DNA of 43,823 bases from Octopus bimaculoides (lineage: Eukaryota), in NCBI RefSeq assembly GCF_001194135.2, contig NC_068987.1:58785880-58829702 (forward strand), in the 5' to 3' direction. Each line of letters starts with the position of its first letter. Positions within the stretch are counted from its first letter, which is position 1. Of this stretch, positions 11,170-43,823 are shown piece by piece. The notes under the pieces are model-generated. The model had not been told where the DNA came from. It made no database searches and saw only the letters and a list, made by a program, of their open reading frames with translations. Made by a program: the position numbers and the translations under genes.

Positions 11170-11391
<222 letters not shown>

Positions 11392-12664: not shown

Positions 12665-12841
<177 letters not shown>

Positions 12842-14137: not shown

Positions 14138-14176
14138 AAATGCATGAACGCTCTACAGCAAGTAAAGGCACGACAT
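14138..14176 (+). CDS. GFPT: GFAT small exon: KCMNALQQVKARH
   Basis: tttcag| acceptor, CAT|gtaagt donor; matches KCxNALQQVxAR; 39 nt, phase 0-0. Confidence 0.95.
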
Positions 14177-16096: not shown

Positions 16097-16264
16097 TAAA
16101 CTGGCAATATCCAGCCTAAATATTCTACCTGTTTTGTGTTCAAACCAGTCATATTTGGCCTCTCACACCTACCTTACGATGTCATTTTAAAAATAGACAA
16201 TCACATCATCAAAATCTCAAAGCTACAAAATAATACATGATTAACTGAAAACAATGCTATAGGG
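16097..16264 (-). mobile_element. Partial piggyBac-type MITE
   Basis: Ends ctatagggttaa; body as in 22194-22411. Confidence 0.6.
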
Positions 16265-17959
16265 TTAATCCTTAGGATAAAGAATATTACTTTAAAGTTC
16301 TACTGGCGGCCTTTGACTTTTTCTAGCCAAAGGAATTTTTAACCCAATATTTACAAGTTATTATTTATAGCTTATCTGGCTCAAGATCCAACACTCCCCA
16401 AAAACAAAGAACGAGGACTCTGAAATAGATTTGTTCGTGTGTGTGTGTGTAGTATTAGGTACAATTCATCATACAGTTTACATGTTATTATTCAGTGTTA
16501 ATGCATTATTTTATTGATACTAATGATGCCTTAATCAACGAAAAATATAGAGTTTAGGTATACAAATTGTATGAAACTAGTATGAATATGTTCTTATATA
16601 TCATGATACAGTTTGTTTGCTTTTTCACTGATTAACTGTACACTTTCTTTGAAAGTTATAGGCATTTCTGTTGCTATCAGAGCATAAATTGTGATTTTAT
16701 TCCAAGAAGATTTACTACTGTTGTCAAATTTGGAGTCTTCATTAATGCAGGTGGAGATTTGTTTGGAGTAAATTGAGATGTAGACAACTTGAGTTTTTGA
16801 AGCAATCTGAATTCTGAAGAGTTACCTATTACAAGAATGGACCAAGCCATGATTGGGCATGGGTGTTTGTATGCTGGCGATTTGGTATGGCTGATGGAGC
16901 ATTTAGCCTGTTTTGGTGGCAGTACTTTTTGGGACCAGTGGGAAACACACATGCACACTCTCATGCTGTGCAGAAATATACACATACAGATCAAGAGGAA
17001 GAGAGAGAGATTACAATTTATTAATTGAACACAACTGACCAAAGCATTTTCCGTTACCTCATATACATAAAGACAAGCATGCTCACACACATAAAGAGAG
17101 AGAGAGAGAGTCCGGGGAGAGAACAGGAGGAACATTCAAATATCAGATGTCCAATAAGTCAACTTTGAATTAGTAATAATTGGCAGCACCAGAACAGTTG
17201 GTACTAAAACATCTCAAATCCATTATCAGAACAGTTAAGCAAACACCATATTGCAATCTTTGTTGCTTTATAGGCTGTGTTACCTGAACTACAATGAAAT
17301 AACTACATAGCCAAAGGACAAACTAAATTCAGCTGCCTGTTTGCTTAGTCACTGAACCAAAGTTATCAAAGAACATACCAAAAATAGATTAATATTTTTT
17401 CCAGCTGTATAAAACATAGCATTAGATCAGTGGCTATTCTGATGTTTATGTATGATTCTATCCTTCCTCTGCATTGGCACATTGTTGTTCATAGACTTCC
17501 GGATAAGCAGTTTGACTACAAATAAACAGCCCACACAGTCCCTAATGTAAAAATAGTTACCCAAGATGGTGATATGGAGACTAAAGGCTGTGCTCCAGCA
17601 TGGCCGCCATCAAATGACTGAAACAAATAAAAGAATAATAGTTGCTACAGGAAGATGTGGCTTAGACTTTATACCTACAGGTTCTATTATAAAAGTAACA
17701 GTTTATCTCAAAATTCTTCTGGGGAACCTGTCATATTTTCATGCAGATCAAAAGCCATAACTAGTTGAAGAATGGTGGTACTCATGTTCACTGGGCAAAA
17801 ATACTGTCAAACAGTGGCTTCAGCAGGAACAAGTTCAAGCTCTTTTTAGGCAAGAGCCTAAAAAATGCTCAAATTCAAAAATTGTATAGTTTATCAATTG
17901 CTTATCAGTAAAGCACAGCTATTGAAAGAATATGATCAATAGTTTTAATGATCGTACAT

Positions 17960-18340
17960 GTTGGCACTCCATCGCTTACGATGTCGAGGGTTCCAGTTGA
18001 TCCAATCAACTGAACAGCCTGCTCGTAAAATTAACGTGCAAGTAGCTGAGCACTCCACTGACACGTGTACTCTTAACGTAGTTCTCGAGGATATTCAGCA
18101 TGACACAGTGTGACAAGGCTGACCTTTTGAATTACAGGCACAACAGAAACAGGAAGTAAGAGTGAGAGAAAGTTGTAGTGAAAGAGTACAGCAGGGTTCA
18201 CCACCATCCCCTGCCAGAGCCTCATGGAGCTTTGGGTGTTTTCGCTCAATAAACACTCACAACGCCTGGTCTGGGAATCGAAACCGCGATCCTATGACCG
18301 CGAGTCTGCTGCTCTAACCACTGGGCCATTGCGCCTCCAC
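17960..18340 (-). mobile_element. Full-length tRNA-derived SINE, family A
   Basis: Reverse complement of 20651-21017; 13-bp TSD atgatcgtacatg/atgattgtacatg with one mismatch. Confidence 0.9.
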
Positions 18341-18379
18341 ATGATTGTACATGATCTAAGGACTTTACTTGCATAAATG

Positions 18380-18640
18380 AAACTGTTTTCACAGAATACT
18401 GGAAATGAATGATACTGTTTGTATGATAGTGACACTCATTTACAACTGTCATATAATGTCAAGACAAGGAGACATGCATACACACAGTGAGCTTCTTTCA
18501 GGTTTGTGTATACCAATCCACTCACAAGGTTTGGGTCAGTCCAGGGGCTTTAGTAGGTGACACTTGCCTAAGTGAGACTGAACCTGGAACCATGTGGTTG
18601 GGAAACCAACTTGTTAACTACACAGCTACACCTGTACCTT
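18380..18640 (-). mobile_element. Family B1 SINE fragment
   Basis: Body and core motifs on the reverse strand. Confidence 0.65.
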
Positions 18641-18869
18641 GTTAGGATTTGAAATAACAAGCTTTCTAATGTTGCTCAGATGCTTTCTAATAGCTTAGCA
18701 ATGTGATATGAATTTCAAGCCATTATTGGTTTAACAGCAAATTGTTTGTAGTGAATATAAAACATTAATACTTAGGGTTTGTCATGTATAAGTAGCAGTT
18801 CAACATATAACCAAATGAAAAGAAAATTTCTGAGGGGATTTGCTTGTGAGATATTTAGGTCTTTAATCT

Positions 18870-19003
18870 CAAACTCTGAGGTCAACTTTGCCTTTCATAC
18901 TTTTGGGGTCGATAAAATAAGTACCAGTTGAACACCGGAGTCAATGTAACTGACTCATCCCCTACCCCAAAATTGCTGCCCTTGTGGCAAAATTTGAAAC
19001 CAT
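18870..19003 (+). mobile_element. Family C SINE fragment
   Basis: gaggtcaactttgcctttcat...ggggtcgataaaataagtaccag. Confidence 0.7.
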
Positions 19004-19994
19004 AAATGATTCTTCAAATTTGCTGGAAATCCAAACTAAAACATTTGAAAACAGCACTTCTTCTTTTGTAAACATTTCAGTTGACTTAAAAATATAAAAA
19101 GGCTATGATTACTATGACAAAATTGTCTTGGACAATATTTCATTATTAATATAACCCTCTAGACATATTTCCTCTTATTAGCTAACAAATATCCTAGTAA
19201 AGACATTCATCTCATTAAACTTTCTTGTTTGTGAATTGATGTTCCTATTGTATCTTAGTTAAGACAAAGAGAAATTAATTATAATATTGATTTCTTCTGG
19301 CTGTGTAGCTTTAATAATTTAGTACCATGGCAGATAGAGAGTTTATGTCATTCTTTTTACAAAGCAATAATAATGCAAATCAAATACAGTGTTTTCAGCT
19401 TTATATCAACACTATTTCATGGACTTTACATCTTAGTTTATACTGCTCACCAGAGGACTATCAAAATACAGTAGATGCAAACCTGATTATATATGATATT
19501 CCTCCAGCTTAGTTAAGAACACCAATAGTAATTAGAGTATTAAACAACAATGCATAAATCTCAAATTAATTTGTGCTCAGATGATTGTATTATCTTTTTG
19601 TCGAAGAGTTAAAATATCATTTTCATAGTTTTTGTACTTATTTAAAGTGAAAATTAAGTATAAAATTTTGCCCATAAGAAAAAACGATTTTTTTTTTTTT
19701 TTTTTTTTTGCCCGTTTGGTATACATTCATGCAACCTTGTTGTTTAACAGTTAAACAAGTGTCATATCAATTTGTTCAAAAAAAAGAAAAAATATATTAA
19801 AATTTATCTTGAATAATAAAAAAGAAAAATTTGAAATTAAAATTTTAATCTATAATCAAAATTCTATAAACTGTTGGAATTTAATTTCACCTCACATCAG
19901 TTTATAAAATCTTCAGTTTTATTGATTTTAGACTTAGACACCATTTTTTCCCCTGTTTTTTAATGCAAGATTTTAATCTAAATATATAGTCAAG

Positions 19995-20275
19995 AGTGAA
20001 GGTGCATGGCTTAGTAGTTAGGGTATTCAGCTCACAATTGTAAGGTCGCAAGTTCAATTCCTGACAGCACTTTGTGTCCTTGAGCAAGACATTTTATTTC
20101 ATATTGCTCCAGTTCACTCATCTGGCAAAAATCAGTAGTACCCATATTTCAAAGGGCCAGCCTTATCATACTCTGTGTCTTGCTGAATCTTCCCGAGAAC
20201 TACATTAAGGGTTCACTGTCTGGAATGCTCAGCTACTTGCACATTAATTTCATGAGCAGGCTGTTCTGTTAACTG
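19995..20275 (+). mobile_element. tRNA-headed SINE with a family A-like 3' half
   Basis: A/B-box-like head tggcttagtagttaggg...gttcaattcc; core gtgtccttgagcaagac. Confidence 0.7.
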
Positions 20276-20650
20276 GTTAAGAAATTGCTTTTCAAACTGA
20301 TACAACTCACCTCTTTCTTTTAAATTTTTTTGTATGTGTGTCCACCTCTGCCTTTGCACCTAATTTGTAACATGTTTCTTGCCCACAACTCTTCTTCCTA
20401 ACACACCCTCATCACTCTTCTGACTATGGTGCTATTCATACAACTATTGTAATTATATGACTGCAAAACTGAATATATTTCATCCCCAACCTTTTTGTGC
20501 TCCCAGTTACCCTCCTTACAGCCACTTTATTTCTCCTATTCTGTATCATCCTTTACCATCATATTTTCTTATGCGTGCCTCTTTCACTTCTAGCCTTCCT
20601 CATTACACCCATTCATTCTGCCAGTTTGGGTCCTTCTACTCATACTGACC

Positions 20651-21017
20651 GTGGAGGCGCAATGGCTCAGTGCTAAGGGCAGTGGACTCGCGGTTTTGAT
20701 TCCCAGGCCGGGCATTGTGAGTGTTTATTGAGCGAAAACACCTAAAGCTCCATGAGGCCCCGGCAGGGGATGGTGGCGAACCCTGCTGTACTCTTCCACC
20801 ACAACTTTCTCTCACTTTTACTTCCTGTTTCTGTTGTGCCTGTAATTCAAAGGGTCAGCCTTGTCACATTGTGTCACACTGAATATCCCCGAGAACTACA
20901 TTAAAGGTACACGTGTCTGTGGAGTGCTCAGCCACTTGCACGTTAATTTCACGAGCAGGCTGTTCCATTGATCGGATCAACTGGGACCCTCGACGTCGTA
21001 AGCGACGGAGTGCCAAC
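20651..21017 (+). mobile_element. Full-length tRNA-derived SINE, family A
   Basis: A-box-like tggctcagtg; perfect 13-bp TSD actcatactgacc (20638-20650 and 21016-21028). Confidence 0.9.
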
Positions 21018-21299
21018 TCATACTGACCACTCACTCCATTCCCCTCTATTCCCATCTCTATCCATTTGCCATTCTCTTTTCACACACTTATCAACTTATC
21101 TACCCATTCACTCTGTCTAATCTTCTGGGCCACTTCTCTTATGTTCATCTTCCTGTAACTTCCCTATCTTTTCTCCTTTTTCAACTGAGGTAGCTGTGTA
21201 TTTTCACTACTGCAAGACACCAGTTTCTGTCCCTCTATCATACTTTAATCCCTTTTCACCTGGCATAAAGCCACCCACCTCAATACTACACCTTTTCAG

Positions 21300-21540
21300 T
21301 TGAGGTGCCTTTTCTTGCAAGTCACTTGGTGACCTCACTAGTCCTGGTGTCATATAAAAAGCATCTAGCACCACTCTCTGAAATGGTTGGCATTAGAAAG
21401 GACATCCAATCATAGAAGCTATGCCAAAGTTGACACTGGAGCTCTTTGCAGTCCTTTGGCATGTCAGCTTCTGTCAAAACGTCCAACCCATGTTAGCCTG
21501 GAAAACAAATGTTAAACAACAACAATAATGATGATGATGA
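21300..21540 (+). mobile_element. RTE-tail element
   Basis: ggttggcattagaaaggacatcc...ccaacccatgttagc...(GAT)n. Confidence 0.7.
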
Positions 21541-22193
21541 ATATTATTTTTAGTGTTATTTGTTACAATTTTGTATGATATATATATAATTTTTTTTTTC
21601 ACTTAATGTAATTTTCTTTACATGCCCTTGAAATATTACTGTTGCTTTTGATCACTTTTAACTGCTTTGCTTTTAACAGCTGTGCTTACATAGAATATAA
21701 ATTTCTTCTTAACTACTGATATATTTGTAGATTTAATTCACCGTTTTTTTGGTTTTTTTTTTCTAAAAAAGTCTGTTCCAGACAGTATTACACAGTTACC
21801 ACACCTATTTAGGAATGATGATATATCAAAATTATGCAACCTTTATTTCTTATTCCAAATAACATTATCAATACAATCGAAATTATATCAAGGGCTCATA
21901 ATTTGCAAAAAATTTACTTCTTAGTCTATGGAGAAAGCCACTGAGTATATTAAAAAAAAAGGTATTACTGATAAGCATAACAATGATCTCTAACTTTGGC
22001 ACAAGGTCTTTATTTCAGTAGGAAGAATTTAGTTACTTTAAACCCTTTTTTACCCTTGAATTTACCAGACACATTTGATGACCCAGAGGAATAAAAGATT
22101 ATCTACTCTTGTGGGTTTTAAACCTTAGACCTGATTAAATAAATATAAGGTACTCAACAGTTTCAGAGAATCTACCACTGTTAATTATATTAA

Positions 22194-22411
22194 CCCTTTA
22201 GTATTTAGACCAGTTACATCTGGTCAAAATATTTTTTCCTGTTCTATGCTTAAACTGGTCAGGTGTGGCCTCGCACATCAACTGTACAATATCATTCTAA
22301 AAATCAAGTCAACTCATTAAGATTACAAAGGTACAAGATAATGCATGATTAATTTCAAAACATTGTGAATAAATAAGCATATCTTTTGACAGTAATGTGA
22401 ATGCTAAAGGG
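22194..22411 (-). mobile_element. piggyBac-type MITE
   Basis: TTAA|cccttt...aatgctaaaggg|TTA; CCC/GGG termini. Confidence 0.75.
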
Positions 22412-23089
22412 TTATTAATGAAAACAACCAACCAGCTTGTGGGTTAGCAGTATTCAGATTTGATTTTGCTAATCATTCCCTAAGTATTTAAATGATGAAA
22501 ATACAGTAATTCTTCCATCTTTGAAGGAAATGCTTTATGGGTGGTTTATGTATAAATTTAATTTTAAAAAATAGCATCGTTTTGATATTATTTGATTTGT
22601 TGCTTTCAAGCAATATAGTATCCAAATCACTATTTCAGTAACTGGATACCTCTGTTATATTTGTTGGCATCCAGTTGAATTTTAACAGATACTCGACTCT
22701 TTGACAGTGAAACTTACTAATGTTTCTATTCTGAATCAAAACCACTTTTCAAGATACAAAAAGAAAAAAAAGGTTCAGTTTGAATATTCTGTAAAAGAAA
22801 AATTATCCCTTAATCTTTGTAGATATGAAAATGTGCATGTTCATATGTATCATTATGTAAGAGCTATAAAATATATTTAAAATGTATTTTACATAGTGCA
22901 AACAACATCTGATATAAAACCCAAAACTTTGGGTAGGTTGGAAGGATAGACATGTTGACTATATCAAGCCACAGTTTACTCAGTGTTTCACCTGAGGCTG
23001 GACCATTGTCAACTGTGAAATTTGCAATTTGTAGAAAGGGTGTGTTACCTTATCTGCTTCACACATCCATATAATAATCCTTTCTACTA

Positions 23090-23275
23090 TAGGATCAGAG
23101 CCTGAAATTTTGGAGGAGAGGTCTAGTTGATTACATTGATCCCAATGCTTGACTAATACTTAATTTATCGACCACAAATGGATGAAAGGCAAAGTGGTAC
23201 TTGAACTCAGAACATAAAGACAAATGAAATAATACTAAGCATTTTATCTGGCATGCTAACAATTCTGCCAACTCA
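23090..23275 (-). mobile_element. Family C SINE, reverse orientation
   Basis: ataatcctttctact...tttatcgacc...gatgaaaggcaaag...gaactcagaac. Confidence 0.7.
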
Positions 23276-24230
23276 CCACCGTAACACGCATAATGGTGTG
23301 TGTATGTGTACACATGCATATATATATATATATGTATGTATATCTGATCTTCTTGTGTAGACATGACCTTTGTAGTATAAAAAATATTGGGGATTATGCC
23401 AGCATGGATAATGGACATTAAATGAAGATGATGATGACGATGATAGATCGGCCCAGCCATTTTTATACGGGTTAATACAAAAGTATTTGTTCCTCTCCAG
23501 AGGCAAAAAGAGGAACTCAAATTCAACTGATACATTTATTGACTATCATTCCAAACCCTACTGCATTTCACATGGAATAGTTGGTCCTCCAAAATCGTCT
23601 TGGTGTATATGTTGACCAATGATTTTTGGCTGTAAAGTTTGACCTAAAGAATTCCACTTGTATGCAGAAAAATGCAGTACTAAATGATGCAAGTGCTAAA
23701 GCTTTGAAAGACAATACAGTGGCTGAAATGATAATGCTGCGTTAATTATCTTTATAATATTTAGTTTTATTATTCCATATTCTAAGTTTTAATATCATAG
23801 CTATCCATTAAATAAGCACCAACATAGTACAAGTTATTCCAACCACATTATCCATCTTTGTGCTCCATTAAAAATGCTTGGAGTTACTGAATAAGTAGAA
23901 GAGTGGAAAATATGTCAAAGTATTGAGTTTTGTTTCTTAATGTTTTAAACTAAAATCACACTATTTTAGGTTAATAACAACTCCTAACATATAATACTAT
24001 TTCACTGTATCCTTCTTCTTTAAATATAATAATCCTTGTGCTAATGAGAGAAATTATTAACACCATTATTCATATTTTTATTTATTTAAAATATCAAATC
24101 AGAAGTTAATAAACACGTGTAAGCACAATTTGCTTTCTGTTGAGAAATTGGACATCTATATTCACTTAAGTTTTGAACTCGCCTTTAACTATTTAGTTCA
24201 AGGGAGATAACTACTAACTTTCTCTTCTAG

Positions 24231-24275
24231 GTTGACTGCCCCCGGAACCTAGCAAAGAGTGTTACAGTGGAGTAA
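24231..24275 (+). CDS. GFPT: GFAT canonical last coding exon: VDCPRNLAKSVTVE*
   Basis: tctcttctag| acceptor; invariant GFAT/GlmS C-tail PRNLAKSVTVE, stop TAA. Confidence 0.98.
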   Translation, partial: VDCPRNLAKSVTVE

Positions 24276-24295
24276 ATGATGCCTCAGAGACCAAT

Positions 24296-24301
24296 GTAAG
24301 C
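24296..24301 (+). promoter_or_regulatory. 5' splice donor 20 nt after the GFAT stop codon
   Basis: AAT|GTAAGC, the same hexamer as the donor after exon 15472-15633. Confidence 0.7.
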
Positions 24302-24317
24302 AGTGTAAATCTCTTAG

Positions 24318-24323
24318 AATAAA
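24318..24323 (+). promoter_or_regulatory. Candidate proximal polyadenylation signal
   Basis: AATAAA 43 nt after the stop, followed by U-rich sequence; the hexamer is common in AT-rich DNA. Confidence 0.45.
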
Positions 24324-25809
24324 ACTAATATATTTTAGTAATTTATTAGAGTCTTAAAATATTTATATTATTTCTTTTAGTTCATGTTTAGTGTATCTTG
24401 GCTGCAGTTTTAAATCTTGCTTTTGTTTCATTTCTCTTTTTTTTTTTTTTTTTTGCTTCACTATAAGCATTTCAAAAGTAACTTATACTTAAACATCATT
24501 TATACTTACCTCATGTTAAAAAAAAAAAAAAAAAAATTCTGAAAAATTCTCAACAATTTTTCTTTGTTCAGTTGACTTATGTCAAGACCCATTCTTTATG
24601 CCTTCCTTTTAAGAAACCTTTGTTCTAAAATATAAGCTTCAAAACCATAGAAAATTTAGTGCATCACATTTAGTTTTTTTAAAATTTTCTGCTTTGTTCC
24701 TCTGCTTATCTTTTACTTTATTGTCTGTAAATCTTTAATATCCTTCTATTTGTTTCACATCATCAAAGATGTGTGAAATAAATTATCCCTTACTTGAAAA
24801 AAAACAAAAAAAAACAGGTATGGTTAGCTACAGGAAGGGTATGAAGCTGTAAAACAATGCCTCAAGGATATAAACTTCTAACTCCTGCTTGCATGGAAAA
24901 ACAGACATAAAACAAATGATTGATTTTTCAGTCATTTATGCCATTTCCATATTGCCTTGTTATTCCCCACTCAGATTTCTTTGCATTTCTATAATACCTC
25001 GGTGTTTTCCAGGATATATATATATCTTCTTAACTTGCTTCCTGTATCTTTTTAGAAATATATTCTCCTTAATTTGTAGGCAGTAAAAGGTCTACAACCT
25101 AAAATGTATCTCTGCTTGTCATACCTCCATTTCAGTTGTGACACATCTCTCAGTCTGCTTTTTTAAATGAAGATTGAAATTTTTGCTTTTTTGTTTGTTA
25201 ATTTTGTTCCACTTCCCCTCTGTAGGAGGCAATGTTGTCTAGGTTCTTTTGTCCATGAATCTTAGCCTCATCTGATTACATGGGTGTGTAATGTTATACA
25301 TGTGTCTGTATCTGCTTTATATAATTGTAAAGCAATAGATTCATTTATTGGCAGTCAAAACACATGCATGTAAAGCTGTGGGGAAGGCATCCCTTCTAGG
25401 AGAGTGATATGTACTAGTCATATTGTTTAAGTGCATATGTAAATATATGTGCATAACTATCCAGATATATTCTTTTACCCTTCTAGATAATAGTTGTTTA
25501 ATTCTGGATCAGGCCAGATTGAACTGATCTAAATTCAAAAACAAATGCAACCTTAACCTTTCGTTGAACACCTTACCTCACATGCTCCCTCCATAGATTG
25601 AAAATTATTTTCATTTATAGAAACTTGTTATCTCTACTACTGTTGTTAGTAATTTATAAAATAAGAAATAGTTCATCTTATATCAGTACAGGTAAAAAAT
25701 ACAGAATTAGTTTGTCTCCTTTTTCTCTTCTCTTATGTACCACTGGAAAAAAAAATTGTTTACATCTGATTTGATTGGCTTCATACTCTTGCTTGATGGA
25801 GCTAGGGTC

Positions 25810-26010
25810 ATTCTAAGTTAGTGGTCCCAGAGACATCATCATGCATAGAGCTGACCAGATCCACCAGCTCTCACCATTGCTGGTGGTCTTATGCCAGCCC
25901 CTCTGCATCTTCCAAGGTGACATCGATCCTCTGGAGATCTTCCCCAATCATGTTCAGCCATCTGGTGCAGGGCTTGTCACAAAGGCCTCTTCCACCCTGC
26001 TGCTGCTGCA
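25810..26010 (-). mobile_element. LINE (RTE-like) ORF C-terminal remnant
   Basis: Reverse frame WLNMIGEDLQRIDVTLEDAEGLA*DHQQW*EL resembles the RTE RT C-terminus. Confidence 0.55.
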
Positions 26011-27398
26011 TCAAACGACATATACAAATCTTGTAACAACCATACATATCTGGATCAACAAATTGATGAACTAGTTGCTATAGCAATTGAACTGTAATCT
26101 GAGAAAAGTAATACTGAATTTGATTTTGATTGCATTCTAATTTCACATTTGATCAGTTCTTACTTCTGCTTTCCAATCTTAAATCTCTGGGTTAAACCTA
26201 TTCCTCTTCTGTAACTATATCCACAAGTTACTATTTAACTTTAGATCTATTAGTTTTAGCACTGCTTTTGACAGCACTTTTGCTGTTCATTTTTTCTTTC
26301 AAGCTTATATTACTCTCTGCTGCTGTATTGCATTCTTCTACATGACATTCTCTCCTATGACACCTAAACAGTCTTTTAAAATTCATTTTGAATTGAAGAG
26401 AGAAATTCTCCCTCTCTCTTGAATAGTTTTTAAGAATTGTTTCTAATTGTATGGGATTGTCTCTTTACCAAAAACATAACATCATTTAAATTGTGGTTCT
26501 ATTACTTGAGTCATCTGAATAGATAGGTTTTTATTTTATCTGTTAATTCAGAGATGCATTCTGTTCGATTCTTTTGTTTCACAAAAATCTTAGTAAAAAC
26601 CACAAAGACCTACTGAAACTACATTTTATATTTTTCCATTAATTCATCTATTTCATTTGGTTAGCTTGTTTCATCGCTATCATTTATTTGTGTATATTCG
26701 TCCACGTATTATTATTATTAATAATAATGAGTGTATTGACTGCAGTGCTGAGTTGCACTGCAGCTCCTTGGAAAAGAGTAAAAGAAGGGGGCAGAAAGCA
26801 GCAGTAAGTCACATTGTGAGTTCAAATCCTGCTATGGTCGACTTTCCTTTTTATCCTTCTGAGAGTAAAATATACAATCAAATGTTCTCCTCTCTCCAAA
26901 TTCCTGGTCTTATACCAATAATTATTATTCCACTTGAATTTATGTGACTTTGTTTTTGCTCCTCCCTGTGGTTGTGACTTTTGTGTCTAGAGCAAACTGG
27001 CTGAGTTGTTAGAGTATCAGATAAAATGCCTCTCAATATTGTGCTCAGGGTTCAAATATTACTGAGGTCAACTTTGCCTTTGCAGGAAAGTGGGGGTTGA
27101 TAATAAATACCAATCTAAGGTGGCAAATTGGTAGGACTGTAAGAACATTGGACCAGATACTTTGTGGTGTTTGTACCAACTTGTTACCATTCTGAGTTCA
27201 ATACCCACCATAACCTACTTGTATGGTAGGCTTAATCTGTTGCCCTGTTTAACATCACTTTAGTGGAATCCACTCTGTTGCAAGCTCCCAGGCCACGTTT
27301 CCAGTTTGAAGATACCTTCCATCCTTCCTCCCCAACTACTGACTAAAACAGATTTTTAAAAAAAATGAATGGGCCTATCACAGCAAATAAAGCATTAT

Positions 27399-27762
27399 TC
27401 ATCATCATCATCGTTTAACGTCCGCTTTCCATGCTAGCATGGGTTGGACGATTTGACTGAGGACTGGTGGACCAGGAGGCGACACCAGGCTCCAATCTGA
27501 TTTGGCAGAGTTTCTACAGCTGGATGCTCTTCCTAACGCCAACCACTCTGAGAGTGTAGTGGGTGTTTTACGTGCCACCGGCACGAGGGCCAGTCAGGCG
27601 GAACTGGCGACAGCCACGCTCGAAATGGTGTGTTTTACATGCCACCTGCACAGGCGCCAGCCCATCGGCACTAGCAACGATCTCGCTCGAATGTCTTTTC
27701 ACGTGCCAGGGAGGCGACGTTGGTAACGATCAACGGCCACGCTCGAAATGGTGCATTTTACG
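27399..27762 (-). mobile_element. CpG-rich RTE 3' UTR element with internal tandem subrepeats
   Basis: (TCA)n tail, ccatgctagcatgggttggacg, repeated gccacgctcgaaatggtg. Confidence 0.8.
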
Positions 27763-28156
27763 TTGACTGTTAACTTCGTTATGGTGTTTAGTTCTTTGCA
27801 TGCTTTCATTTCATTGACATTGACTTTCATCTCTTTAGAATCACTAAAGTAAGAACTAGTATTATATTTAAGGGTTAATTACATCAATTACCCCATTATC
27901 CAGCATACAGGTCGATGTAGTACATAGTATAAATATGTAGTGTAAACATTCAAACCTCAACACTATCTTTCCAAATCTTGATGCATTTCAAATGGAATTT
28001 TGGGGCCTCATCTTGGTGTTTAAATCAACCTATGCTTTTTGGATGTAAATTTTGGTCTAAAAAATTTGATTATTTTGCCAGAAAATATGGTGTCCACTGA
28101 TAAAAGTTGGCCTTGTGCCTTATCACTATGCTTTACATGTTTGAGATATTCCTTAA

Positions 28157-28352
28157 CCTTTTAGTGTTTAAACCAGCAATATCTGACCCAAATATTCTAC
28201 CCATTTTATGTTCAAACTGGCCAGATCTAGCTTCTAAAACATAAACAATCACATCATTAAAATGTTGAAGTTGTGAGATAATGCATGATTAATTCCAAAC
28301 TATGTGAATAGATAAGCATTAGATTTGAGAGAGTAATCTGAGTGCTAAAAGG
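28157..28352 (-). mobile_element. piggyBac-type MITE
   Basis: TTAA on both sides (28153-28156, 28353-28356); cctttt...aaaagg termini. Confidence 0.8.
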
Positions 28353-29223
28353 TTAAGAGATTTGTGGCAAGAATATGAATGACATACTTCAACATGCACA
28401 GGTATAAGTTAAAAGCATGTTTGTTTTGTATATGCATGTACTTTAAACTTGCCGTCACCCATAAGCAAATATAACTTGCTAACATGTACCATGCTTTCAC
28501 TAACTGTTTTTGATGCCTATTCGGGCATGAGCAGATGTAGATACCCTCTTGACACATCCATCCTTTGACCCAACAGTACATTCAGAATCTGACAGCTGGA
28601 GTTGGTGAGAGCTTCACCAACACTCACCACTTGGGCAATAGATCTGTAGTAGGATTGAGTCGACAGCTTGGGAAATGTGTGCGTGTGTGTGTGATTGTGA
28701 TTATGTTTTTGTTTGTATTACTTTCTAACACACATGGATATATTATTGCTTCTATTTATGTATATGTCTATGTGTGTGCACATTATGTAGGAGTTTCTGT
28801 GTATGTAGACTTTCTCGCATTAACACCTTATCCTTTGATGGGCATAACTACAGAGTTGTACCCAAGTCTGGTGGGTACAACTCTGTAGTTATGCCCTTTG
28901 ATGTTCCCTTTGTGTATAGAGGTTATTGGTAGTCTCCCCGAGTCTGAGAAAGATGTTTCTGCAATTTCTTGATAAACAACATCCACAGATGATTTGATTA
29001 TCATCAAATGTTTTGTGCTCATTCTCGCCATCAAATCGACATTACTTATACAGGCGCACTGTGTGTCAAACATCAGATGTCAGAGTGATGGCAAAGCAAC
29101 ATGAAATGAAGTGTTTTGCTCAAGAATACAACGCACCACCGAGTTCAGTAATCAAAATCACTATCTCAACACCCTAACCACTTGGCCACACACCTTAGTG
29201 TGAATGTGTGTGTGTGTGTGTTA

Positions 29224-29754
29224 GGAAGTTAAAAGTTATGGTAGGTCATAGATTGACCATTGGTTTTGCACCTACAAAACGCTTAGCAGTATAGGTGACT
29301 CGTGAGATTTAAATTACAGAAGGCGCTTAACTTCTCTAGAACTGGAGGTAGAAATACGTAACTGCCTGTTGGTTTTGTAAAAAAAATAAAATAATTGTCC
29401 ATGCTGTGGGACGGAGCCGATCACCCTTAGATCGGCTTCCGCTATAGTGATATTCGAAGGAGCTGTGATGGGACTGTTCAATGAATGGCGAATTCCTTTT
29501 GTTGAACAGTCCCATGTCGATGTAAGGGGGATAACCCCGTCATGCAGCATGGACAATTTTTTTTTGTTTACAACACCAACTGACCATTATGTATTTCTTC
29601 CTCCAGTTCTAGAGAGATCATGTGCCTTCAGCCATTTAAGTCTGACGAAGCGCTTATAGATGCAAAACAAATGGTCTCTCTGTGACCCACTTATACCGCT
29701 TTATAGGTGCGAAACCAATGATCACTCGATGACTGGCCATAACTTTTAACTTCC
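29224..29754. mobile_element. Non-autonomous TIR DNA transposon, TA-flanked
   Basis: Perfect IR ttaggaagttaaaagttatgg/ccataacttttaacttcctaa, extending imperfectly to about 60 bp. Confidence 0.8.
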
Positions 29755-29805
29755 TAAAAAATACATTATTGCTCTAATGTCTTGGAGTGTGCTTTTTTTT
29801 CCACC

Positions 29806-30470
29806 CTGTGTGGCTTTGTGGTAAGAAGCTTGCTTCCCAACCACATGGTTCCAGGTTCAGTCCCACTGCGTGGCACCTTGGGCAAGTGTCTTCTACGATA
29901 GCCCAAAGCCGACCAAAACCTTGAATGAATTTGGTAGACGAAAACTCAAAGAAGCCCATCGTGTGTGTATGTATACATATATAGAAGGTTGGAAAGGAAC
30001 ACACGAGTTGATATATATATGGAAAAAAAGTCAAGGTAGAAAATGCTAAAATAATTTTATAAAAAAACATTTCAGTACCAGTTTCGGTCATTGAGACTTT
30101 TTCAACTGTAAGTATGGAAAACAATTAAATTTTGGAAAAATTAAATGAAAAATATTTTAAAAGAATATTTGTATTTGAACACTATGCAAATATTCTTTTA
30201 AAATACTTTTCATTTAATTTTTCCAAAATTTGTTTTCCATACTTACATTTGAAAGGGTCTCAATGACCGAAACCGGTACTGAAATGTTTTTTACAAAATT
30301 ATTTTAGCTTTTTCTACCGTGACTTTTCTTTCCATATATATAAGTGTGTGTGTGTGTATATATATATATATTTGTGAGTGTTTGTTCCCCCACCACTTCT
30401 TGACAGCCGATGTTGGTGTGTTTATGTCCCTGTAACTTAGCGGTCTGGCAAAAGAGGCCGATAGAATAAG
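29806..30470 (+). mobile_element. Family B2 SINE split at its central microsatellite by a palindromic insert
   Basis: Head and core at 29806-29975, 3' part at 30345-30470. Confidence 0.7.
30012..30342. repeat. Long imperfect palindrome (about 160-bp arms, about 10-nt loop)
   Basis: cagtaccagtttcggtcattgagac versus gtctcaatgaccgaaaccggtactg; arms end in (TA)n. Confidence 0.9.
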
Positions 30471-30609
30471 TTTGACTTATTGTTTTTTAAACTAATATAT
30501 TTTTTTTTCTGTTCCTCTAATATTTGCATGTATGCATCAAATTTTTCCCATATTAAATTCATCTTTCCTTATTTATACTGTGATTATTATTATCATTCAT
30601 CAGACAGCA

Positions 30610-31108
30610 AACTGTTAGAAACAGCAGCACAGTGGCAAAATGCTTAGTAGTATACTTCCAGTTCTTTGTTCTGAGTTCAAATTTTGCCACGGCCAACTTT
30701 AGTATTGGGTGGGGTCAATATAATCGACTAATCCCTGCCACAAAATTTCAGGCCTTGTACTTGTAGTAGACAAAATGCCTAGCAGTATTTTCTCCATCTC
30801 TACATTCTGAGTTCAAATTCCACCAAGGTCAACTTTGCTTTTTATCCTTTCAGGATTGATGAAATAAATACCAGTTGCATACCCTGCTGTACTCTTTCAC
30901 CACAACTTTCTCTCACACTTTCTTACTGTTTCTGTTGTGCCTGTATTTCAAAGGGCCGGCCTTGTCACGCTCTGAATCTCCCCAAGAACTACATTAAGGG
31001 CGCACGTGTCTGTGGAGTGCTCAGCCACTTGCATGTTAATTTCATGAGCAGGCTGTTCCGTTGATCAGATCAACTGGAACCCTCATCGTCGTAACCAACG
31101 GAGTACCA
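30610..31108 (+). mobile_element. Family C copies followed by a 5'-truncated family A SINE (30881-31108)
   Basis: Motif matches to other copies. Confidence 0.7.
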
Positions 31109-31141
31109 CTGTTCACGCACTTTTGGCTATCGATGCTATCT

Positions 31142-31352
31142 CTCTTTAGCATTGCAAATGACTCTTCCAAATGCGGTGCTTGTGTATTCACATTGTTTTG
31201 AATTAATCATGCATTATTTCATAGTTTGGAGATGTTGATGGTGTGTTTTTTAGAATTAAATTGTAGGGTAAGTGTGAGAAGTTAGACCTGACCAGTTTGA
31301 AATTATAGATAGAATATTTGGGCTGGATATTATCAGTTTGAATGCTAAAGAG
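31142..31352 (+). mobile_element. piggyBac-type MITE
   Basis: ctttagcatt...aatgctaaagag|TTAA. Confidence 0.7.
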
Positions 31353-31444
31353 TTAATTGCTTTCATTTCTATTTTTACTGCTTTCTGTCTTCTTCCAATC
31401 TGTTGTAGTGCACCTTTGGACTGTATACAATAAGTTAATTGTTG

Positions 31445-31725
31445 TCATTGTATAACTGACTTAGTAGACACCCACAAGATTATCCACCATCTTTCCAACG
31501 ACAACCTGAGGCATGGGCATCTTTTTGAATTCCATATGTCAAACACTCATGGACATGCTTACAAAATCAAAAAGTAACACAGCACCTATAACTTTCGGAA
31601 ACATTTTTTCATGCTCAGAATTGTTGAAGCATGGAATAAACTATCTGAATCAGTTGTTAGCTGTCGAGATACTACATCCTTCAAAACTTTCATGTGTCCT
31701 GAAATCCGCTAACATTACACCTGGT
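31445..31725 (+). mobile_element. CR1-type LINE 3' end remnant
   Basis: NTHGHAYKIKK*HSTYNFRKHFFMLRIVEAWNKLSESVVS...SFK resembles the CR1 RT C-terminal TRGH...FF..RVV..WN.LP motif. Confidence 0.75.
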
Positions 31726-31801
31726 GGCTTTTCTTTTTTTTTTTCTCCTTAGTTTTAGAGCACCAGAGCACTGTACACAACAATTTCTTTCATTATATAT
31801 A

Positions 31802-33018
31802 CACCCAAAAGCACGCTAATAGCTTAGGAGTGAAATTTAGGATTTCTCATTTTTCTGTGAATCAATTTTGATAAAACTTTCCCCAACTGGTCTACACAGT
31901 GTGAACCGTTGTTATGTTGTCATTATTCTGTGTAATGTCCTTTTTTTATTTCAGATTCTTCAGTTTTGGGGTGAACCACACTAATAGCTTTTGAATGAAA
32001 ATAGCCCATCTAGACAATTTTCTTTTTTCAGAAAATGAAGGGTAATAATACGTATTAAGCATACATTGAGTATATATTTAACAGCAAACCATAATATTAG
32101 AACATTTATTGACATAATGAATTGTTTAGCCACATAAGCACCATTTTGACGGATAACTTCAAAAATCCTGTAAGTCATAGAATCTGTCAATTTCTTAATG
32201 GTAGCAGGTTGGACTGCCTCTGCTGCAGCTTTGAGAGGTTGCCCATAAGACATTTTTCGACATAAACATCTTGTTTAATGATGGACCAAAGATTTTCGAT
32301 AGGGTGAGATCTGGAGGTGCTGGTTGCCACTCCATCAACCTTTCACCTTGTATGCCATAAGACCCTAGTAATGTTTGGGTGGTCCTAGCAGAGTGGGAGG
32401 GAGCATTGTTATGCTTGAATATGAGATTCCTTACAAGTAACAGCAGCATGTTATCTAGCCAGGGATCCAAGACCAGTAGGTGGTTGCAGTCATTTTAACC
32501 CCTTCAAGCACCCTGACTGGACCAACAAGTCCACAACACGATCCCTCTACCCTGTTGTTGATGGTGAAAATGGCTTTGCTTTTTTGTTCAGGTTTCCCAT
32601 GTAACCTGCGACCAGTATTCCTGAAATCCCTAGCTGTCACAGTCTTGGGGGTCCCATTAGATCATTTCTTCCTTGGGGAAGGGTCCTTCAGGAATTGTTT
32701 GAACGTGTCCACAGGAGCTGACTTCTCCAAGGTGGCATGAAGAGAGGTGCCTTTAGCACTTTTCTTGATGATGACAGACTTTTTTTTCATCATTAAATCC
32801 TTTTCCATGTCCCATTGTTCTTAGAGAGGAAAGACGCTATTAGCGTGGTTCACCCAAAAACTAAAGAATAAAAATGGATCTTACACGGAATAATGAAAAC
32901 ATAACTATGGTGTTCCCATAGTGTGCAAACCAGCTGGATAAAGTTTTACCAAAATTGATACTCAGAAAACCGAGAAATCCTAAATTTCACTCCTAAGCTA
33001 TCAGCGTGGTTCTGGGTG
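31802..33018 (-). mobile_element. Tc1-family transposon, internally deleted and frameshifted
   Basis: TA|cacccaaaagcacgctaatagcttaggagtg...cactcctaagctatcagcgtggttctgggtg|TA with about 100-bp TIRs; transposase remnants NNAPSHSAR, W(Q)PAPPDL, IKKLTDSM. Confidence 0.9.
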
Positions 33019-33249
33019 TATATATATAACTCACTTTGACTGTCATCTCTTTGGTCATGAGTGTAAAGTTCCTAAATTCTATTTCTTGCTTATTCAGTCA
33101 ATTCTAACTTGCAGTCATCAAAATTGGCCTCATTTCTCATGCAAGGAATGATTATAATGCTTTTTCATTTTTATTATTTTACTTTTAATATTATGTAGAA
33201 TTTTTCATTTAAATATTTCTTGACTTAATGAGATCAGTAAGCAATAAGT

Positions 33250-33580
33250 CTGTTTCTTATTCTATAGTTCTCTTTTGCTGAACTGCTATTGTAGGGAGAC
33301 ATGAACAAACCAGCACCAGTTGTCAAGTGGTGGTGGACAAACATGCAATTTTTTTCTTTTCTTTCAATCTGAAGCTGAGTGTTTTGTCTGCAACTTCAGT
33401 TTCATGCCTCTCATGTAGATATTTACAGTGGGCTTACAGTTTCCATCTACCAAATTCATTCATAAGACATAGATCAGCCCAGGGCTATAGTAGAAGACAC
33501 GTGCCCAAAATGCTGTGGAGTGGGACAGAACCTAAGACTACGTGGTTGAAAAATGAGCTTCTTAACCACACAACCATGTC
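33250..33580 (-). mobile_element. Family B2 SINE, reverse orientation
   Basis: Motif match. Confidence 0.7.
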
Positions 33581-33794
33581 TGTGTCTGATTATTTTCCTT
33601 TGAAATAATGGTTTCTGATTTTGGCACAAGACAAGCAATTTTGGGGATTAATTTTACTGATACTTTATTTTAATGACCTCGGAAAGGCAATCCTCAGCAG
33701 GATTTGAACTCAGATCATAAAGAGCCAGAACAAATACTGTAAGACTTTTTTTTTCACACTCTAATGGTTCTGCCTGTTCATTAACAACTTTTAT

Positions 33795-33982
33795 CCCTTT
33801 AGCATTCAGATTACTCTGAAAAACTATAATACTTATTTATTCACATTGTTTTGAAACAAATATGCATTATCTTGAAGCTTTGAGATTTTGACGATGCAGT
33901 TGTTTATTTTTGGACTGGTCAGTTTGAACATAAAACAGGTAGACTGTTTAGGCCTGATATGGTCAGTTTAAATGCCACAGGG
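33795..33982 (+). mobile_element. piggyBac-type MITE flanked by TTAT
   Basis: TTAT|ccctttagcatt...aatgccacaggg|TTAT. Confidence 0.75.
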
Positions 33983-34244
33983 TTATTTTCCTTGAAAATA
34001 ATGAAAAATACATTAACTTTTGTCAAAAAATTCAGCTGATACAATGATAGCACTTATTTATTTAAGCAAGCTCTGTGGCTCCTTTTGATAGTCAGTAGCA
34101 AACTATTAAATTAGACAGCTAGCCAAATATGTTCTTTTAATAAGTTTTCAGCCTGTTATAATTTTGCATTCCATAGATCACTATTTCTTACACTATAAGT
34201 TATTGCAAATGCTAACAATATTCTCATTCAGTAAATATTCATTG

Positions 34245-34725
34245 GCACAGACATGACTGGATAATGAAGTGCTTGCTTACTTCCCCACCACATAGTTCTG
34301 GGTTCAGTCCTTTTACGTGGCATCTTGAGCAAGTGTCTTCTACTATAGCCCTGGGCCAACAAAATCTTGTCAGTTGATTTGGTAGATGGAAAGTAAGAGA
34401 AGCCTGTCATATACTAAGAACATTTTGATTCAGCTCCATGCAGCTGAGTTTCATAGGCTTGTCATAGAAATTTAGCTCGGTTTGTAATACAAAATGTTAA
34501 GTTGCATGGAGCCAAATCAAACTGTTATTAATAGATCTTATATGTAACTCCTATCAAATGTGTTGAGTGATTGTTTTTTTTCGTTTGTTCGCTCGTGTAT
34601 GTTCTATTTGTCCCCCACCCACTTGACAATGGGTGTTGGTTTGTTTACATCCCCTTAACTTAGCAGTTTGACAAAAGAGAACAATGGATTAATTGTCTTT
34701 CAAGGCAGTAGTCCAATGACTGAAA
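34245..34725 (+). mobile_element. Family B2 SINE interrupted by a small IR element (34415-34530)
   Basis: Head and core at 34245-34410, 3' part at 34585-34725; IR taagaacattttgattcagctccatgcagct/agttgcatggagccaaatcaaactgttatta. Confidence 0.65.
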
Positions 34726-34878
34726 GAAGTGAAAGATAAATGATAAAAACTATCTCTTATACTATAAGCTATTGTGAATGCTAACAATAATTTTGTTCAG
34801 TAAATATTCAAACGCATTTTTTTTATGTTATTCGGTTTTATAATGTTTCTCTTTTTTTCTTCTTTTTCCTTCCAACAG

Positions 34879-34920
34879 ACTGACCAGCCACGACACTTAC
34901 TGAAGAGCTACACACACTAA
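34879..34920 (+). CDS. GFPT: Alternative GFAT terminal coding exon: TDQPRHLLKSYTH*
   Basis: Long polypyrimidine tract ending ccttccaacag|. The phase-0 frame shares D-x-P-R-x-L-x-K-S-x-T with the canonical tail. Confidence 0.85.
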   Translation, partial: TDQPRHLLKSYTH

Positions 34921-36800
34921 AGGCTTTAACAGAAATGAGCTTTTTTCTTTTTTTATCTTGTTAAAGGAACTCCTCTAACCTAACATCTAGTAATTCTTGA
35001 TCGGCTTACTGCCCCATATATATATATATGTATTCCAGATATGGACAAATTATTTTTTTGCTATGAGTTTACATCTAACCAGTTCTCAAATTCGGTAATT
35101 CATTAAACCTTGGAATTTATATTGGTTTTTTTTTTTTTTCTGTCTTTTAGAAAAAAAGGGAAGGATAGGAATTTATTATCATCAGTGTAGCTTTTGGATG
35201 CAGAGCTTGATTTCTTTGGCTATTATGTGGCTCACTGTTCTCTTGTGCAGATGTTTTCATCCAATAGTAAAGTGAAAAATTCTTTAACACTTTACTTGAT
35301 TTCAGATGTCAAATGAATAACCTTGTTTTTCTGTTTCCAAACTTATGGACGTTAAACACTAATGAGAAGCTCTTATAACGTTAGTCTTTATTTTTTTACC
35401 AGGTGAGAGTGTACATGGTTGCTTGATAGCTTAGAAATAGCAGCCAAACCTCCGTTGTGTCACCAATGCAATGACGTGAAACACATTTTGACAGATAAAC
35501 ATGAGACATGTAACCTTGTGTATGGTCGCTTGACTTGCTAGAAATAGCAGTTAAATCTCCTTCAAATCCCACTACTGTCTTACAGAAAGGACACATTAAA
35601 TAATGTAGTCCTACATGCTCTGTTTCAATAAAACATAGGTCACAACTAGAATGCCTTTTACCCACTGGCTTCCTTGATAAAGGTTGACTTGGGATGACTA
35701 AACAACTGTCAAAGTCAAAATATATGGAAATGGTACATACTGTTGCTCATGGTATCCTATCAAGGGTTTTGTGTTTTTTTTATTCATTTCTTTATTACTT
35801 ACCCACAAGCATAAAAATTGACTAAAATAAAAGGAAAAAAAAAACTTTTTTCCCCTCCCCTCAAAGTTTGATTTGGTTTCTACTCATATGTGAGTATGGT
35901 TTCCATATTCACATACATCTTATAAAATATGGTTCTGTAACTACAAATTTTTTTCTTCATAGCTAATGGTGACCTCTTACTTCTTTTCAAATGTGCGTTA
36001 ACTTTAAACCTATACACATCAATGTTTTCAGTACCTTTTAAATGTTTTTGTATCAAGAAATATAAATATATATAATGTGATTTAATTTAGGGGACCAAAG
36101 TGAATACATTAAATTACTAAGACTTACCTTAGTTATATACTGAATATATATACATATATATACCTTAAACTACTGTATACTATTTAATTTATTATTTTGG
36201 ATGCAAAGTGGAGTTTGAATTGGTTATATACAATACATACAATCACATGTCTACATTGTCAACTGTTAAATATTTTTGTGTGTGGATAATTAATTTCTTT
36301 TGACTTATACTAAACTGTTGATAACTGCTTTCTGTTAAAACTGTTTTATGGTTTATGTGTGTTTCTTTGTAACAGTTGGTTTTATTTAATTGTCTATATT
36401 TGTTTTTTGTTGAAATTTTTATTTTTATCTTGAATGTTGCTCGTCAACCTTCACAAACTTCAATCAAGTAAATTATTTACTCACACATATTTCCACATGG
36501 GTCATATAACATATCTGCTAAAATTCGGCTTCAATTTTGGTTTTGTTTGTTTTTTTATTTTTTGTATCCCTCTGTCCATTTTATCAATCTATCATAGTTT
36601 CATTTCATGCAATTTGACTAAATTTGGAACCATACTTTTGTAAATAATTTCCTATTTGAATTTGTGATGGTATAAAAGCATACATTTACTTTTGAGGATT
36701 TTTCTTTTATTTACAAAAAGAAAAGACAATTTCTATATGATTCCATCCTGAAGTAACGCAATGATCTATATATAATGAATAAAATTTATTGATAGAAAAT
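34921..36800 (+). other. Probable long distal 3' UTR
   Basis: AT/U-rich and repeat-poor; AATAAA at 35627-35632 and 36778-36783. Confidence 0.55.
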
Positions 36801-39439: not shown

Positions 39440-39815
39440 TTTTACTTGCTTCAATCATTAGACTATACCCATGCTGGGGTACCACCTTGAAGAATGAATC
39501 AACCCCAGTACTTATGTCTTAAGCCTGGTACTTATTCTATCGGTCTCTTTTGTCGAACTGCTAAGTTACAGGGATGCAAACACACCAACACCAGTTGTCA
39601 AGCAGTGGTGGAGATAAACACAGACATAAAGACACACACCCACTCATATATATGTATATGACGGACTTCTTTTCAGTTTCCATCTACCAAATCCACTCAC
39701 AAGGTTTTGGCCAGCCCAAGGTTATAGTAGAAGACATTTATCCAAGGTGCCACACAGTGGGACTGAACCCAGAGCCATGTTGTTGGGAAGCAAACTTCTT
39801 ACCACACAACCATGC
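39440..39815 (-). mobile_element. Near full-length family B2 SINE
   Basis: Motif match on the reverse strand. Confidence 0.75.
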
Positions 39816-40689: not shown

Positions 40690-40811
40690 NNNNNNNNNNN
40701 NNNNNNNNNNNNNNNNNNNNNNNNNNNNNNNNNNNNNNNNNNNNNNNNNNNNNNNNNNNNNNNNNNNNNNNNNNNNNNNNNNNNNNNNNNNNNNNNNNNN
40801 NNNNNNNNNNN
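40690..40811. other. Assembly gap inside a (TA)n tract
   Basis: Run of N. Confidence 0.99.
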
Positions 40812-40844
<33 letters not shown>

Positions 40845-43295: not shown

Positions 43296-43586
43296 CCTAT
43301 ATATTTATTTTTCTTTTCAAAAATGTATACCAGAATAATTTCCAGTGTTTTATACTCCATGTCATTTTAGTACATGGTTAAAAGGAATGCCATTTCCTCA
43401 AATAATATACATATAAATAATAATAACAAACCTTGAATATGGTGATGCATCTTATCAGCCAACAAATACTGGAAGTGTTTACAAATGTTTTATACATTTC
43501 ATTTCATACACACACATGCACATCACATCATATACTATATAAACATGCCAGCTTTGCTGTAGCAACAGTCTTGATTTAATTTAATC

Positions 43587-43823
43587 CAGGACATACGTAA
43601 GCTCGCAAGGAATGAAGCCAGTATGCTCCGTTGGATGTGTAATGTCAATGTGAATACCCGTCAGAGTGTAAGTATCTTGAGAGAAAAGCTGAACATTAGA
43701 AGCATCAGTTGTGGCGTGCAAGAGAGACGATTGCGCTGGTATGGACATGTGGTGAGAATGGAGGAGGATAGCTGCGTGAAAAAGTGTCACACCCTAACAG
43801 TTGAGGGAACCCGTGGAAGAGGT
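43587..43823 (+). mobile_element. 5'-truncated RTE-clade LINE, intact ORF2 C-terminal segment running off the window
   Basis: Stop-free DIRKLARNEASMLRWMCNV...LREKLNIRSISCGVQERRLRWYGHVVRMEEDSCVKKCHTLTVEGTRGRG; RLRWYGHV and GxRxRG are RTE motifs. Confidence 0.9.

Follow-up and report, generated by a model that had tools for sequence, protein, structure and literature searches.

GFAT (glutamine:fructose-6-phosphate amidotransferase) controls entry to amino-sugar and chitin synthesis, and its C-terminal tail is, to our knowledge, among the most invariant peptide motifs known. The stretch of Octopus bimaculoides DNA analysed here, 43,823 nucleotides long and referred to below as the window, holds, on its plus strand, the 3' half of a GFAT gene, and a first-pass annotation had proposed that a duplicated, diverged tail exon at 34879-34920 offers this enzyme a second C-terminus, to be swapped for the first by exon skipping. 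This raises the question of whether the second tail is a genuine coding exon or an accident of sequence and, if it is genuine, what the exchange might do to the enzyme.

The window starts inside the gene: the first GFAT exon is seen near 7046, and the exons of the N-terminal class II glutaminase domain, with Cys1, would lie upstream of the window. Splicing of the exons present gives a 361-residue C-terminal half that aligns end to end with the isomerase domain of human GFAT1 (E 2e-181) and in which Pfam recognises two SIS stretches (E 8e-67). The features of the locus are as follows.

Near 7046-7186, 8366-8563, 10040-10162, 11200-11358 and 11932-12048, plus strand: GFAT exons.
Near 12402-12536, 12665-12793, 14129-14170 and 15472-15633, plus strand: GFAT exons, continued.
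15472-15633, plus strand: last shared GFAT coding exon (GDLIVICNSGDTETQ...LHIAEKRNCD), ending AAC TGT GAT in phase 0, with donor GAT/GTAAGC.
24231-24295, plus strand: putative 65-nt cassette exon with the canonical tail VDCPRNLAKSVTVE, a stop codon and a 20-nt spacer; donor AAT/GTAAGC from 24296.
24296-34878, plus strand: putative 10.6 kb intron separating the cassette from the terminal exon, filled with repeats and with no other GFAT-like exon within it.
34847-34878, plus strand: terminal-exon acceptor, AACAG after a 30-nt pyrimidine tract (18/20 pyrimidines).
34879-34920, plus strand: coding sequence of the alternative tail TDQPRHLLKSYTH and its TAA (34918-34920), coding if the cassette is skipped and 3'UTR if it is included.
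34921-35130, plus strand: presumed start of the 3'UTR of the terminal exon, with the first poly(A)-signal hexamer, ATTAAA, at 35102-35107, then a T-rich stretch.

The canonical tail at 24231-24275 reads GTT GAC TGC CCC CGG AAC CTA GCA AAG AGT GTT ACA GTG GAG TAA (VDCPRNLAKSVTVE and a stop, the TAA at 24273-24275), is preceded by ...ttctcttctag and is identical to the animal consensus (xDxPRNLAKSVTVE, with the Lys603 equivalent present). Direct reading of 34879-34920 on the plus strand bore out the second tail behind its strong acceptor: ACT GAC CAG CCA CGA CAC TTA CTG AAG AGC TAC ACA CAC TAA (TDQPRHLLKSYTH and a stop) follows directly on ...tttctctttttttcttctttttccttccaacag. Each copy starts straight after an AG, with the codon of residue 595 (E. 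coli numbering) and in phase 0, and the preceding exon ends in that phase as had been claimed (GAT/gtaagc at 15633). The canonical tail has 14 residues and the alternative tail 13, seven of which are identical; the alternative tail retains D, P, R, L and K and loses the N, A, V, V and E of the canonical one. The octamer ATGTAAGC has only two occurrences on the plus strand, the 15632 donor and the cassette donor, and the latter has T at -1, as in the proven 15633 donor. More poly(A) hexamers lie at 35595, 35627 and 35826, although they are weak evidence, since such hexamers average 2.2/kb across the window.

The introns hold a SINE-like repeat of about 130 bp, present in many copies on both strands (e.g. 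6440-6540, 29828-29956, 33433-33546, 34277-34414 and 39654-39793), besides other dispersed repeats. Just upstream of the alternative exon's acceptor lies a 62-bp direct repeat (34180-34241 and 34749-34810, 85% identical); this pair brackets two SINE-like pieces (34277-34414 and 34607-34692) and looks like a local duplication around insertions. In self-BLAST the alternative exon and its acceptor region fell within a segment (34811-35535) that has no second copy in the window and is flanked by repeat copies; the exon itself is not part of a repeat. An open reading frame at 32198-32494 on the minus strand (...NNAPSHSARTTQ...) resembles a mariner/Tc1 transposase remnant, and another at 43575-43823 on the plus strand (...RRLRWYGHVVRM...) resembles the C-terminal end of a LINE ORF2; neither of these transposon-like frames had a Pfam match at E <= 0.01. 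Three runs of N (about 1560-1940, 6340-6410 and 40690-40840; 572 bases in total), amid TA-rich microsatellite, are gaps in a draft assembly.

A resemblance of this size could arise by chance, if an arbitrary open frame happened to stand behind an arbitrary pyrimidine-rich AG. Of Markov-shuffled windows, 11% contained a stretch that matched the GFAT tail in register at 7/13 residues, and tblastn with the whole GFAT C-terminal half against the window did not rank the alternative tail above noise. The window also contains three unrelated 6/13 tail matches. The first-pass annotation had counted seven of 13 residues identical in register, four of them through different synonymous codons, and had taken the latter as a sign of protein-level selection. 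Both counts are correct, but the argument is invalid within one species, where a chance match looks alike, since identical residues with arbitrary synonymous codons and 15/18 differing bases in the non-identical codons are the pattern that chance produces. What chance does not readily supply is the combination of features: 7/13 identity without an internal stop and with a stop within three codons was seen in 1.3% of shuffled windows, and with the addition of an AG at the exact codon boundary and a pyrimidine tract in 0/300. Strong acceptor-like sites (at least 18/20 pyrimidines, an AG-exclusion zone and Y at -3) number only four on the plus strand downstream of 15633, the alternative-tail acceptor among them, and the joint chance expectation of an alternative-tail exon is near 1e-6 to 1e-5. 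A PSSM scan of the window gave two matches only, at 40.3 and 18.9 bits, the next best scoring 10.6. No other GFAT-like relic exon was found in the window by tblastn, which excludes another copy of the gene as well as a processed pseudogene or retro-copy. The 7/13 similarity alone is weak; the question of chance was settled by orthologous alternative exons in other genomes and in cDNAs.

With the spliced C-terminal half joined to the alternative tail as query, a protein search returned 120 animal GFATs, the longest of 631 residues and none from a cephalopod. Nearly all of these end ...PRNLAKSVTVE, and two carry the alternative tail. The first is XP_064595082.1 from the chiton Liolophura, annotated by NCBI as 'GFAT 2-like isoform X2' and ending ...KGYDTDQPRHLLKTYTIKDD; its end reads ...VLKGYD-TDQPRHLLKTYTIKDD and is 11/13 identical to the alternative tail of the window. 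For the chiton alone, where the evidence is this isoform X2, the tail may belong to a separate paralogue that bears no other. The second, P0007, ends ...AELRKCD-VDQPRGLLKIYSEGD and derives from a 2-kb, intron-less, cDNA-like contig (L005) in which ...AELRKCD, the end of the penultimate exon, is joined directly to VDQPRGLLKIYSEGD and its stop, with a 776-nt UTR after it that does not contain the canonical tail. The 90%-identity cluster of P0007 holds four alternative-tail products (one of them full-length, 695 residues) and two canonical-tail products; the sequences upstream of the tails are identical, so one organism expresses both forms of a single GFAT gene. Two canonical cDNAs, from two other species, carry the alternative tail untranslated, in another frame of the 3'UTR: L009 contains VDQPRALLKTHTAFE and a stop 29 nt after its stop codon, and L008 contains VDNPRSLLKVHNTMVH and a stop 25 nt after its own. 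The 377-nt UTR of L006, a related cDNA with the canonical tail, lacks the alternative one.

The same arrangement is present in two further genomes. In the bivalve Solemya velum the canonical exon (L010:43227) is followed 2.6 kb downstream by ...ttgtag/ATT GAT CAG..., which encodes IDQPRHLLKTYATST and a stop; in the annelid Capitella teleta the canonical exon (L011:14457) is followed 300 nt downstream by ...caccag/GTG GAC CAA..., which encodes VDQPRGLLKVHTH and a stop, a tail of the same length as that of the window. In Capitella a 20-nt spacer also lies between the canonical stop and GTACAG. The D.PR.L.K pattern matches only the canonical and alternative sites in each of these two loci, and in both the second copy is preceded by an AG acceptor at the codon boundary seen in the window. 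Between the cassette and the terminal exon the window has 10.6 kb, Solemya 2.6 kb and Capitella 0.3 kb. The alternative-tail consensus is [TIV]D[QN]PRxLLKx[YH]. In a rough neighbour-joining tree the JGI cDNAs group with the lophotrochozoans (Solemya, Capitella and the window), and the chiton sequence sits on a long branch.

It can be seen that the window's alternative tail is nearer to those of chiton, bivalve and annelid (9-11/13 identical) than to its own canonical tail (7/13), so the two tandem copies appear to have arisen before the annelid-mollusc split. The duplicated, diverged tail exon of the first-pass annotation is thereby upheld, and frame-preserving conservation in related species, whose absence it had counted as part of a refutation, was found in all three groups. 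Chance is countered by the identity to the tails that occupy this position in Solemya, Capitella and Liolophura, and by the same class of sequence in cDNAs; we regard it as extremely improbable.

Other searches added no further alternative tails. In Nematostella and Ixodes none was seen within 10 kb downstream, a weak result since the copy of the window sits 10.6 kb downstream. The protein searches reached no further than proteins about 1.75 times as long as their query, which left full-length GFATs out of range: a 67-residue query (penultimate exon plus alternative tail) gave three short genomic-ORF fragments only, of 63-99 residues, and a 43-residue tail-focused profile gave proteins of at most 81 residues and no further alternative tails. 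Nor did any turn up when representatives of 50%-identity clusters were searched exhaustively with a profile, as was to be expected where isoforms collapse into one cluster. A degenerate DNA pattern for the alternative tail, run on metagenome contigs, picked up three bacterial contigs, which were rejected as chance matches.

The phase-0 intron just before the tail (...D/V-D-x-P-R) is shared in its position by vertebrates, molluscs, an annelid, a tick and a cnidarian (Nematostella L012 1100; Ixodes L013 18918; read-through ORFs P0150-P0234), and genomic ORFs read ...YD-VS... into GTAAGT at this intron. Since the 14-codon tail is a separate mini-exon across animals, its duplication would be easy. 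Some vertebrate GFAT entries, including P0104 (Chiloscyllium isoform X3), P0082 and P0064, have unrelated ends after ...RGYDV; most of these look like intron read-through or mis-prediction, and none resembles the alternative tail.

Conservation of an element that lies in the 3'UTR of some mRNAs could reflect a signal in the RNA, in which case the mRNAs that translate it would be splicing noise, and the element is indeed untranslated in the canonical mRNAs L008 and L009. The pattern of substitution is different from that expected of such a signal. Across the first 12 codons of the alternative exon in six taxa, identity is 0.65, 0.80 and 0.41 at codon positions 1, 2 and 3; at the third position the canonical exon has the same value (0.41). 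Two to four synonymous codons serve for each of the residues that never vary in the alternative tails (D, P, R, L, L and K), including exchanges between CGN and AGR for arginine and between TTR and CTN for leucine, which alter the RNA and leave the peptide as it is. Frame, codon-boundary acceptor and nearby stop are kept in all taxa, and four of the six cDNA products of one organism use the element as coding sequence. Purifying selection thus acts on the alternative peptide and not on an RNA motif, and we consider a purely RNA-level role highly improbable.

These observations suggest the following model. The last 14 codons of GFAT encode the C-tail, or C-loop, by which the sugar site is closed and which contains the catalytic lysine; they are present in two tandem copies. 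The canonical copy would lie on an internal cassette exon of 65 nt (24231-24295), its stop codon 20 nt before the donor, and the terminal exon from 34879 would open with the diverged copy TDQPRHLLKSYTH and its stop, at the same codon boundary and in the same phase. Inclusion of the cassette would place the canonical tail in the enzyme and leave the second copy as 3'UTR; if the cassette were skipped (15633 to 34879), the reading frame would enter the second copy and the enzyme would acquire the alternative tail. Since L008 and L009 carry the alternative-tail sequence 25-29 nt past the canonical stop, we infer that the cassette of the window is likewise an internal exon, with donor 24296 and acceptor 34878/34879. 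The junctions 15633 to 34879 and 24295 to 34879 are also inferred to be used in the species of the window.

In related species, cDNAs and genomic loci together demonstrate a short stop-bearing canonical exon (tail, stop and 20-29 nt) spliced to a terminal exon that opens with the alternative tail, and skipping that joins the phase-0 end of the previous exon in frame to this tail. The anatomy is the same in three genomes (window, Solemya and Capitella), both mRNA forms occur in other species, and the swap by skipping of the canonical exon that had been proposed for the window is thus seen in their cDNAs. The distance from the stop to the junction is 20 nt in the window, 25 nt in L008, 29 nt in L009 and a predicted 20 nt in Capitella. 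In mammals, junction-dependent decay is avoided if the stop lies less than about 50-55 nt from the last junction, a rule that may not hold in molluscs; under that rule, the short distance would protect the canonical mRNA from decay. An AATAAA is found at 24318, 22 nt past the cassette donor (24296), and in view of this hexamer and of the UTR of L006, which lacks the alternative tail, some canonical mRNAs may end without splicing to the terminal exon, giving two kinds of 3' end, one spliced to that exon and the other ended or extended locally. The tail copies are not strictly exclusive at the RNA level, L008 and L009 containing both, and since both are in the canonical mRNA the event is one of cassette skipping, not classical mutually exclusive splicing.

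It could be argued that the exon functions in other lophotrochozoans and has become a relic in this lineage, surviving here only as 3'UTR or intergenic DNA. The intron has grown to 10.6 kb by repeat insertions, a poly(A) hexamer follows right after the cassette exon, and the evidence from the species of the window is genomic. Neutral decay, however, would have broken the match to the chiton tail, which at 11/13 identity spans a very deep divergence; the acceptor, frame and stop are all intact, and every residue on which the other alternative tails agree throughout (D, Q, P, R, L, L, K and the aromatic or His) is retained. We therefore think it quite improbable that the exon is a relic, and a conserved, spliced and coding alternative tail very probably exists at this locus.

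We next consider what such a tail might do. The C-loop covers the sugar pocket, its Thr679 participates in glutamine hydrolysis, and activity suffers when tags are placed on the C-terminus (PMC7000685); a catalytic residue of the isomerase site is Lys603 (PMC9272926). Trp74 and residues of the C-tail form a hydrophobic channel that prevents leakage of ammonia, and in hGFAT2 the equivalent tryptophan touches the Leu-Ala pair of the tail (PMC7948480). Conservation was scored over 247 canonical tails, from bacteria to vertebrates, in E. coli numbering. Asp596, Pro598, Arg599, Leu601 and Ala602 are invariant in 247/247, and the other positions are nearly so (Val605 in 246/247, Lys603 and Thr606 each in 245/247, Asn600 in 243/247). 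The seven alternative tails without exception retain D, P, R, L and K, have Leu602 and Tyr or His at 605, lack Asn600 and end in variable sequence in place of VTVE.

On residue roles taken from the bacterial, fungal and human enzymes, the alternative tail would keep the anchoring and isomerase-site residues Asp596, Pro598, Arg599, Leu601 and Lys603. The changes, Ala602 to Leu, Val605 to Tyr or His, loss of Asn600 and replacement of the VTVE-COOH end, would fall at positions concerned with packing on the glutaminase-domain tryptophan, lining of the ammonia channel and communication between the domains. Since the residues of the sugar site are kept and the domain-coupling part is consistently rewritten, altered coupling between glutamine hydrolysis and sugar amination, or altered regulation, might be expected of the alternative-tail enzyme, an expectation that we hold tentatively and at less than even odds. 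The effect could take the form of a lower or leakier synthase activity, or of different regulation, and splicing would then tune the supply of hexosamine and chitin precursors. The alternative tail could also be used and yet be functionally equivalent to the canonical one, given that the catalytic lysine and the DxPR anchor are kept. This we consider unlikely, since A602L and V605Y/H occur in all lineages at positions that are otherwise 247/247 and 246/247 conserved, which suggests a distinct constraint and not tolerance, and since the altered residues are those tied to channel sealing and inter-domain communication.

Returning to an altered enzyme, a more specific and speculative reading is that lophotrochozoan GFAT possesses a splicing switch, older than the annelid-mollusc split, between a normally coupled enzyme and a 're-gated' form. 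In the latter, a bulky Leu and Tyr or His would take the place of two small channel-lining residues and the VTVE-COOH end, required for communication between the domains, would be gone; such a form might carry out glutamine hydrolysis and/or Fru-6-P isomerisation while aminating inefficiently, or might serve as a modulatory subunit in mixed tetramers, so that exon skipping would set UDP-GlcNAc flux. This is a possibility that we hold to be less likely than not.

The positions involved have a precedent in laboratory mutants. Channel mutants of E. coli GlmS were made by Floquet et al. 2007 (as cited in PMC7948480), and deletion of four C-terminal residues of Candida Gfa1p is described as disrupting domain communication (as cited in PMC3224219). 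Engineered changes at these sites affect the same positions as those altered in the natural alternative tail, whereas the latter is natural, conserved and, on the model, selectable by splicing. The GlmS mutants reportedly included A602L and V605L.

The mechanism itself belongs to known kinds, tandem exon duplication and a stop-bearing penultimate cassette exon. Tandem-duplicated homologous exons are used alternatively in, for example, PKM (exons 9 and 10) and tropomyosin (the C-terminal exons). As in those genes, there are two adjacent homologous copies with the same splice phase, one of which contributes to each protein; unlike them, the GFAT copies are not mutually exclusive in RNA, the distal copy always being in the mRNA, as coding sequence or UTR, and the choice is between including and skipping the stop-bearing proximal copy. 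Exon 18 of Drosophila Mhc is a stop-bearing penultimate cassette exon that switches the C-terminus in the same manner, inclusion giving one C-terminus and skipping letting the frame enter the last exon; however, the Mhc C-termini are unrelated in sequence, whereas the GFAT tails are ancient duplicates of a catalytic motif. Within GFAT itself, the muscle-specific vertebrate form GFPT1-L is made when the 54-bp exon 9 of GFPT1 is included (PMC10514471). This too is a short cassette exon whose alternative splicing yields two isoforms of the enzyme, but it places 18 extra residues between the domains and leaves the C-tail untouched, whereas in the lophotrochozoan case the catalytic C-tail is exchanged for a diverged homologous copy; it is found in vertebrates and the tail swap in molluscs and an annelid. 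Exon 9 of GFPT1 was the only GFAT splicing event that our literature search found; the search turned up no GFAT work on alternative last or terminal exons or on an alternative C-terminus, and nothing on splicing of the GFAT tail in molluscs or annelids. The earlier statement that no GFAT with alternative C-tails had been described therefore stands, although the automatic annotation of NCBI already contains the chiton isoform, and the alternative tail is accordingly undescribed rather than unseen.

The finding means that two versions of the GFAT tail are possible in these animals, for a tail thought to be nearly invariant. A tail in which 'untouchable' positions are changed alike in molluscs and an annelid is a natural experiment on active-site coupling and offers enzymologists concrete predictions. 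Genome annotation is affected too, in that the 3'UTR intron of these GFAT genes is not an artefact. For the animals themselves, the switch would be an extra layer of control, across a large clade of animals, on the step that limits the rate at which hexosamine and chitin precursors are made; if the 're-gated' reading is true, the flux of UDP-GlcNAc into chitin, shell matrix, chaetae and glycoproteins would be set by exon skipping, besides feedback inhibition and phosphorylation.
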